This document shows positions 23,705-23,983 of a stretch of 64,000 nucleotides of DNA, one piece after another. The DNA is taken from assembly GCF_006345805.1 (NCBI RefSeq), contig NC_043003.1, positions 99,448,001 through 99,512,000 of the forward strand. Reading direction: 5' to 3'. Both the position numbers and the translations under genes were made by a program. The DNA is from Octopus sinensis. Its lineage: Eukaryota. The notes beneath the pieces were generated by a model. The model was not told where the DNA came from. It ran no database searches and saw nothing but the letters and a program-made list of their open reading frames with translations. Numbering within the stretch: position 1 is the stretch's first letter; every line of letters starts with the position of its first letter.

Positions 23705-23983
23705 TTGGTGAATTGAAGAAATGGAGCTGAACGCAGATTGAACAGAAATCGTTTTATTTCATTCAATGAAATAAAACGATTTCTGTTCAATCTGCGTTCA
23801 GCTCCATTTCTTCAATTCACCAATAATATTTTAATTTCAATTATCCGCACCAACGCACGGTTGCAACACCATATGGTTGTACCTCCAACCGTGCTGTTTA
23901 CTGCTGTGATTTTTGCTACCAAGGTATCGGTTAAACTTTTGATTAATCTACTACAAGATTATTCATCTTTCTATTTCACATTA
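23705..23983 (+). mobile_element. Non-autonomous PLE-type mini-insertion with a perfect 59-bp/1-nt/59-bp palindrome
   Basis: 23705-23763 is the exact reverse complement of 23765-23823; 23764-23983 aligns with 41180-41400; flanked by (TA)n inside a SINE remnant. Confidence 0.9.

Follow-up and report, generated by a model that had tools for sequence, protein, structure and literature searches.

A perfect palindrome in an octopus (TA)n microsatellite as a probable recent insertion of a Penelope-like element, with junctions that bear on how its family integrates

The window considered here is a stretch of 64,000 nucleotides from Octopus sinensis (NCBI RefSeq assembly GCF_006345805.1, contig NC_043003.1, positions 99,448,001 to 99,512,000 of the forward strand), and the feature of interest lies at 23.7 kb, where a perfect 59+1+59 palindrome is formed by two arms of 59 nt each (23705-23763 and 23765-23823) around a centre base at 23764 that is C on the plus strand and G on the minus strand. 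The palindrome is embedded on both sides in (TA)n, read directly as the left (23571..23701, its limits approximate) and right (23980..24037) parts of the target microsatellite; (TA)n borders nearly all copies of the family. The window as a whole is unusually rich in (TG)n, (TA)n and (TATG)n microsatellites. Matches to Rfam microRNA models obtained at relaxed thresholds (mir-297, mir-3149, mir-466, mir-1277 and others) all fall on these repeats and were rejected as artefacts.

A first-pass annotation, made from the letters alone, had described the palindrome, a gapless alignment of its right half to a second copy at 41 kb with homology continuing over about 220 nt to a shared 3' end, and a retro-insertion with inverted duplication whose 5' end lies at a hammerhead cleavage site. 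These descriptive elements were all borne out. Positions 23764-23830 align to 41180-41246 without gaps and with 56/67 identities, and the alignment runs on with one indel to the common 3' end ...TCTTTCTATTTCA, after which (TA)n begins; in all, 220 nt match 41180-41395 with 191 identical columns (88% over 215 nt by BLAST). In ...GGCCTTCGAAACATGTGTA|GAATG, the base that follows GUA is position 41180, and the centre base of the palindrome, G on the minus strand, corresponds to this G1.1.

Unlike the 41-kb copy, which belongs to subfamily A1, the 23.7-kb copy is a member of subfamily A2, where the context of the cut site is ...GTGCCTTTCGAAACACGTGTA|GAATGAAAT, and it shares 100% identity over 217-219 nt with at least 30 other loci. 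Its inverted, tail-less arm (23705..23764, minus strand) covers the element from G1 to about +60, starting right after the hammerhead GUA| and reading GAATGAAAT from G1.1, and its outer end merges into (TA)n within the AU-rich motif TTCACCAATAAT (mapped as -[1..60] under the entries L031/L075). The direct arm (23765..23979, plus strand), 100% identical to many loci, runs from element position A2 to +215, starting at A1.2 and reading AATGAAAT, and only this arm carries the tail of about 150 nt (23831-23979). Both arms thus stop no more than 1 nt from G1.1, where the hammerhead is predicted to cut, and the junction shows no microhomology, in agreement with the earlier placement of the junction exactly on that cut.

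Related copies occur elsewhere in the window. The 41-kb copy is itself palindromic (138+2+138, 100% identical, centre 41106-41107). Its inverted tail-less arm (40968..41107, minus strand), of subfamily A1 and matched by the motif search on the minus strand, retains CUGAAGA (41107 to 41101), helix II, GAAAC-AUGU-GUA and a cut site at 41034|41033. The direct arm with the tail (41108..41395, plus strand) starts at the G of CU|GAAGA and has a GUA|G site at 41179|41180. It lacks C3, U4 and the 5' strand of helix I, and since it begins inside the CUGAAGA box, no complete hammerhead exists on the plus strand there, the box being kept only on the minus-strand mirror arm. This corrects the earlier reading of the 41-kb hammerhead.

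[quoted passage not shown] Family B is represented by an inverted arm (41510..41957, minus strand), in which a 60-nt deletion takes the 5' strand of helix I, CUGAUGA and most of helix II, and by a direct, 5'-truncated and frameshifted copy (41960..43790, plus strand) with the reverse transcriptase (RT) motif C GGLYRDDCLL and GIY-YIG remnants. The direct copy contains a canonical hammerhead at 43657-43734 (CUGAUGA...GAAAC-AUAU-GUC|A, cut at 43734|43735); the family has no long tail. In a locus from elsewhere in the genome (L076), an inverted arm at 404-499 has lost 22 nt across the cut site, and such deletions of hammerhead parts in inverted arms may reflect skipping of folded RNA by the reverse transcriptase. 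A third PLE family in the window, family D, is present as a 3' end with a hammerhead-like motif (10617..10950, minus strand; CUGAAGA at 10824-10818, then CGAAAC-AUAU-GUA|CCGC); its helix I is CCGC/GCGG, and it ends in (TA)n after ...TATTCACCCTGAATTTATT.

The extent of the family was assessed in the genome from which the window derives (2.72 Gb in 13,516 contigs), where more than 1,300 first-look candidates were obtained with the 41-kb sequence and more than 1,600 with the 23.7-kb sequence. Many matches to the latter are 100% identical over 217-219 nt, indicating that subfamily A2 is very young. Longer family copies extend more than 1 kb upstream, into a reading frame that ends in a GIY-YIG nuclease pattern (AIYQCKV..YVGASS..R..NH..CNLCVSE..N..CPH), and a nuclease query returned 15,661 first-look candidates. 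In L076, an ORF of 896 aa contains the RT motifs FDIASFYPSI, PMGCSDSAQIADL, LYRDDCLF and FLDVTL followed by the nuclease pattern, all read by eye, which places RT motifs A, B and C ahead of GIY...YIG...R..H...E...N in a single frame; open frames of up to 914 aa occur at other loci. Pfam gave no domain match in the 896-aa ORF or in four relatives, and the RT and EN assignment therefore rests on the motifs as read by eye. Relatives carry precomputed PF26215/PF28514 annotations, and among named relatives the best match is a hypothetical protein from the octopod Argonauta hians. The full element measures about 3.6 kb, with a UTR in which 215-220 nt follow a type-I hammerhead whose palindromic helix III is tiny. 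The 220 nt at 23.7 kb are the terminal part of this autonomous element of about 3.6 kb.

By these motifs the element is provisionally classified as a PLE, apparently closest to the published Hydra clade, whose members insert into (TA)n, carry canonical hammerheads and have a C-terminal EN that lacks CCHH and in which CxxC and CxH motifs surround the conserved E and N (Craig, Yushenova, Rodriguez and Arkhipova 2021, PMC8557442). The octopus element resembles this clade in its single ORF and C-terminal GIY-YIG domain, in CNLC-VSE...N...CPH with CxxC and CxH flanking E and N, in the absence of CCHH, and in its canonical hammerhead in the 3' region and its (TA)n target, as well as in the aquatic invertebrate hosts, molluscs included. 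Shared features of insertion are 5' truncation, an inverted 5' copy and a tail at one end. Its N-terminal region has a DKT-like motif that reads DMT. It differs in that no CxCX5C linker, a feature of the Hydra clade, was found in it, in its greater length (about 3.6 kb versus less than 3 kb) and in its longer tail (about 150 nt versus 30-40 bp).

The putative ribozyme is best seen in full copies, which read ...UUUUUUUC-CUGAAGA-GAAAGCC...GGCCUUC-GAAA-C-AUGU-G-UA|GAAUGUAAU in A1 and ...UUUUCUUC-CUGAAGA-GAAAGACAC...GUGCCUUUC-GAAA-C-ACGU-G-UA|GAAUGAAAU in A2. The catalytic core (C3-U4-G5-A6-N7-G8-A9...G12-A13-A14...N-U-H triplet) is present as CUGAAGA...GAAA...GUA| in A1, A2 and A3 and as CUGAUGA...GAAA...GUC| in family B, and the same core occurs in six further families. 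Across these ten families, defined by motif matches within 76 retrieved loci, the common features are the core, a helix III of 2 bp with a palindromic loop (ACAUGU, ACACGUGU, ACAUAUGU, ACAAUUGU or ACAGCUGU), and helices I and II whose complementary strands are specific to each family. Pairing within families averaged 4.1/5 for helix I and 6.1/7 for helix II, against 2.0/5 and 3.1/7 when strands of different families were combined, and no cross-family pair attained the own-family mean. Helix II forms in minimum free energy folds, and in a dimer cofold of A2 the helix III loops pair with each other (-59.5 versus 2 x -25.5 kcal/mol). Rfam hammerhead models yielded no match at the gathering threshold or at E<=10, either in the whole window or in the best hammerhead copies, probably because of a 50-85-nt insertion in helix II together with the minimal helix III. 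The conserved core and family-specific helices make a genuine hammerhead credible, and they uphold the original prediction of one at this site.

Published PLE type-I hammerheads (Cervera and de la Pena 2014, PMC4209133) have much in common with the octopus motif, namely the CUGANGA...GAAA core with its G10.1-C11.1 pair, the 2-bp helix III with palindromic loop (here ACAUGU, ACACGUGU and ACAUAUGU among others), the long helix II, the position within a terminal repeat region, and the frequent occurrence of two copies in opposite orientation at a distance of 100-700 bp. The octopus ribozyme, which is a predicted one, differs from them in the 50-85-nt insertion of helix II and in its missing Rfam score. 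PLE hammerheads are thought to act as dimers, and the metazoan ones cleave poorly as monomers in vitro (PMC4209133).

The arrangement of the arms was examined in 58 unbiased loci, picked solely by similarity to the 3' end. Head-to-head arm pairs were present in 41 of them. The tail (the last 150 nt or so, +68..+215) always lies on one arm only, the other arm ending between +57 and +72; 66 tailed and about 56 tail-less arms were counted. At their outer end, the 56 tail-less arms pass into (TA)n 0-14 nt past TTCAC, within TTCAC(C/T)AATAATAT, an internal motif that resembles the true 3' end, TTTCAC-ATAATATAT. Both flanks consist of (TA)n in the copies of the window and at most loci, and larger examples of the same layout are provided by family B (41510-43790) and by L076. 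An inverted, 5'-truncated copy beside the 5' end, with the tail at one end only, is also the published PLE layout (PMC8557442, Fig. 2). An inverted arm placed head-to-head with a tailed direct arm is thus the standard architecture of the family, and the retro-insertion with inverted duplication seen at 23.7 kb is one instance of a recurrent structure.

The lengths of the two arms vary independently. Among the 41 pairs, the longer 5' reach belonged to the tail-less arm in 17 and to the tailed arm in 19, and was equal in 5; this argues that neither arm is generally a fold-back copy of the other and that two separate rounds of reverse transcription are required. Many junctions are asymmetric, overlapping by 1-4 nt, and hotspots occur at self-complementary sites: TTTTA|TAAAA at 10 loci, ACAC|GUGU in the helix III loop at 4-5, and TCT|AGA at 2. 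Hotspots at self-complementary sequence fit this arrangement, because 3'-end annealing between two same-sense cDNAs is possible only at palindromes. TTTTA|TAAAA, at +8/+9 of subfamily A2 and at the 3' edge of helix I (G1..A10), is the commonest perfect palindrome junction; its overlap is only 2 nt, so that stalling of the reverse transcriptase at the folded ribozyme, and not microhomology alone, could underlie it. A further hotspot of this kind, TCTACACGTG|CC, appears in 19 of the 100 rows listed for the control stretch -26..-19. An asymmetric A2 junction at -21/-8 (…CATTCTACACGTG|CCTTTCGAAAC…) recurs in about 19 of the 100 rows listed for its stretch. It represents either a strong microhomology hotspot (GTG/CAC by the helix III palindrome) or a structure spread from a transcribed source copy.

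A different arrangement is found in L038 (1480-2000), where a truncated A2 tail, ATAAT and the 5' end of a full-length copy follow one another head-to-tail, as in the pLTR arrangement. The full-length copy has a 45-nt 5' UTR with its ATG at 1766. TTTAACCGATACC in this 5' UTR and GGTATCGGTTAAA in the tail are reverse complements, giving 13 nt of 5'/3' complementarity, and the tail block GGTATCGGTTAAA is conserved in the tails of A1, A2 and A3.

The favoured explanation for the standard architecture is dual target-primed reverse transcription from both (TA)n ends followed by cDNA-cDNA joining, a scheme reconstructed from the end products. Both 3' ends of the cut (TA)n target would prime reverse transcription, one at the true 3' end of the RNA (UUUCAC-AUAAUAU...) and the other at the internal look-alike site UUCAC[C/U]AAUAAUAU. 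The two cDNAs would then stop independently, and their 3' ends would be joined, preferably at self-complementary sequence; in the 23.7-kb copy, both cDNAs would have halted within 1 nt of G1.1. The independent variation in arm length favours two separate target-primed cDNAs of this kind. A process with some resemblance is the twin priming of L1, reportedly described by Ostertag and Kazazian in 2001, in which both cut target strands are likewise said to prime and an inverted 5' segment is said to be joined by microhomology. Twin priming on one L1 RNA is said to yield an inversion without duplication, whereas in the octopus PLE the shared region is duplicated and the second priming site is a defined internal one; the duplication implies that two RNA copies, or re-copying, would be needed. 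A literature search on twin priming in PLEs returned nothing relevant.

The remaining question is whether the hammerhead cut determines where cDNAs end. An exact 23-mer from A2 (+9..+31), printed with 45 nt upstream, occurred 2,720 times. The first 100 arms are listed in order of position, irrespective of similarity; of these, 92 continue across the cut site, three start at G1 (p=0.012) and four at +8/+9, the other end points being scattered over -5, -9, -14 to -21, -30 and -34. Arms that match from element position A2 onwards and differ at -8 and -7 amounted to 143 rows. Of the 100 listed, 51 are indel variants of read-through copies, and the others start at A2 (11), G1 (6), -1 (8), -2 (9), -3 (3), -4 (4), -5 (5) and -6 (3). 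A control of the same design over the stretch -26..-19 gave 131 rows, the 100 listed comprising 18 indel variants and starts at -19 (8), -20 (12), -21 (32), -22 (8), -23 (1), -24 (9), -25 (2) and -26 (10). Positions +3..+7 have about one row each.

All these end counts are estimates from 100 listed rows per search, filtered on two flank bases. Scaled for the unlisted rows and the flank filter, G1 accounts for about 16 of about 2,800 arms (0.6%), which is no more than control positions do. Ends at -2..+2 show a weak local excess over -6..-3 (34 versus 15, p=0.009), and also over +3..+7, that does not rise above the control region. T-2 and A-1 can be mimicked by a TA flank, and true G1 ends may therefore be undercounted, which may feed part of this bump. 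Blunt near-symmetric junctions at G1±1 number three with the window included, a fourth, identical junction being found at C4:38141125; each of two 15-nt control regions also has three, or about 0.2 per position, and when the discovery case is left out, the count is two where 0.6 would be expected (p=0.12). BLAST coordinates had at first suggested that blunt symmetric junctions were enriched 20-50-fold at G1, an estimate that disappeared under two matched control searches. An attempt to replicate the 5'-end map in subfamily A1 yielded two rows.

The sharp peak of 5' ends at the cleavage site, which the first-pass annotation had named as the sign that the ribozyme defines the template end, is thus absent, and truncation points are essentially scattered, the outcome that it had named as speaking against this idea. 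Since ends fall at G1 no more often than at comparable positions, the ribozyme does not generally set the template end in these insertions, and the generalisation has to be given up; the great majority of inserted templates are uncleaved at the hammerhead site.

Taken singly, the 23.7-kb locus is an ordinary transposon copy, and it is probably a very recent, 5'-truncated insertion of the abundant A2 subfamily into a (TA)n microsatellite, with the standard architecture. That both of its cDNAs stopped near G1.1 is, on balance, best regarded as a coincidence, if by no wide measure of confidence. Alternatively, the template may have been the 3' product of hammerhead self-cleavage, copied to G1.1 from both sides and joined bluntly, in which case the locus would record cleavage in vivo. 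The two arm ends within 1 nt of G1 and the lack of microhomology are as expected for such a template, and comparable cases exist at C4:38141125 (the same junction), C11:45007925 (G1, A3) and C6:67042302 (-1, G1), together with simple (TA)n|G1 ends at C1:14472444 and C6:72093718. The local bump at -2..+2 (p≈0.01) points the same way, and the conservation of core and helices over ten families would imply a working ribozyme. Against this stand the share of G1 ends, only about 0.6% of arms and at or below that of control positions, the 92 of 100 listed arms that read through the site, the non-significant count of blunt junctions at G1±1 once the discovery case is set aside, and the poor monomer cleavage of published metazoan PLE hammerheads (PMC4209133). 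Arbitrary positions can likewise carry blunt symmetric junctions (41106/7 in the window, L017 at -180, +18, -21, -20), and the self-cleavage origin of this copy is accordingly considered possible but doubtful. Distinctly less likely is a single cDNA that ran from the tail to G1, snapped back, copied itself as far as the AU-rich site and annealed to the other (TA)n end. Snap-back predicts just such a perfect 59/59 palindrome with a 1-nt centre, and the outer end does lie in an AU-rich stretch that can pair with (TA)n; yet a loop of 1 nt is sterically implausible in a true hairpin, and the model accounts neither for the 17 pairs out of 41 whose tail-less arm is the one extending further 5' nor for the zero-loop palindromes centred on natural palindromes. 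As a general mechanism for the family, the single-cDNA hairpin was rejected, the tail-less arm often being the longer one.

It is highly improbable that the 220 nt represent a mobile, non-autonomous RNA beginning at the cut site, in the manner of a SINE or a retrozyme. The idea that PLE termini seed non-autonomous retrozymes has been published for vertebrates (bioRxiv 10.64898/2026.07.22.740005), and non-LTR retrozymes (de la Pena lab; Li, Clavereau and Pollet 2026, preprint) are likewise short, hammerhead-bearing and related to PLE terminal regions. Retrozymes, however, form head-to-tail tandem units from cut site to cut site, and no such unit-length arrays were found among the 100 octopus arms listed, whose neighbours are head-to-head arms or full copies spaced by 3.6 kb. 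With 5' ends scattered from +9 to beyond -1300, G1 starts in only about 0.6% of arms and 220 nt that form the end of an element of about 3.6 kb, this reading was rejected for want of tandem units and of a G1 peak, and with it the earlier claim of a mobile RNA of about 220 nt. Perfect palindromes are a known artefact of long-read sequencing, and an assembly artefact or palindrome formation at the DNA level was therefore also weighed. The same layout, with defined outer ends and a one-sided tail, recurs at thousands of loci and has been published for PLEs of other species (PMC8557442), which leaves this possibility next to none. A parallel for a ribozyme that sets RNA ends is offered by the HDV-like ribozymes at the 5' end of R2 and other non-LTR elements (Eickbush and Eickbush 2010; Ruminski 2011), which, as cited in PMC4209133, are also self-cleaving, reside in a retrotransposon transcript and can set the end of the RNA. 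The R2 ribozyme is reported to set the 5' end of essentially all templates, whereas the great majority of inserted copies of the octopus PLE read through; there, the end of an inserted template is seldom, if at all, set by the ribozyme at G1.

The origin of tandem and inverted PLE insertions and their bias towards microsatellites is an acknowledged open problem (PMC8557442), and in vivo evidence for a role of the hammerhead in PLEs has been lacking (PMC4209133). The young and very abundant A2 family is useful for the question of PLE integration, its junctions arguing that priming takes place twice and independently, that a second initiation site lies inside the element and that joining occurs at self-complementary sequence. 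Tentatively, and with more doubt than confidence in the proposition as a whole, the thousands of near-identical A2 insertions may constitute a natural record of PLE integration, in which two cDNAs from two initiation motifs would be joined via self-complementary sequence, including the helix III palindrome, and in which a minority of about 1%, the blunt junctions and simple ends at G1, would provide the first trace in a genome of a metazoan PLE hammerhead cleaving itself in vivo.
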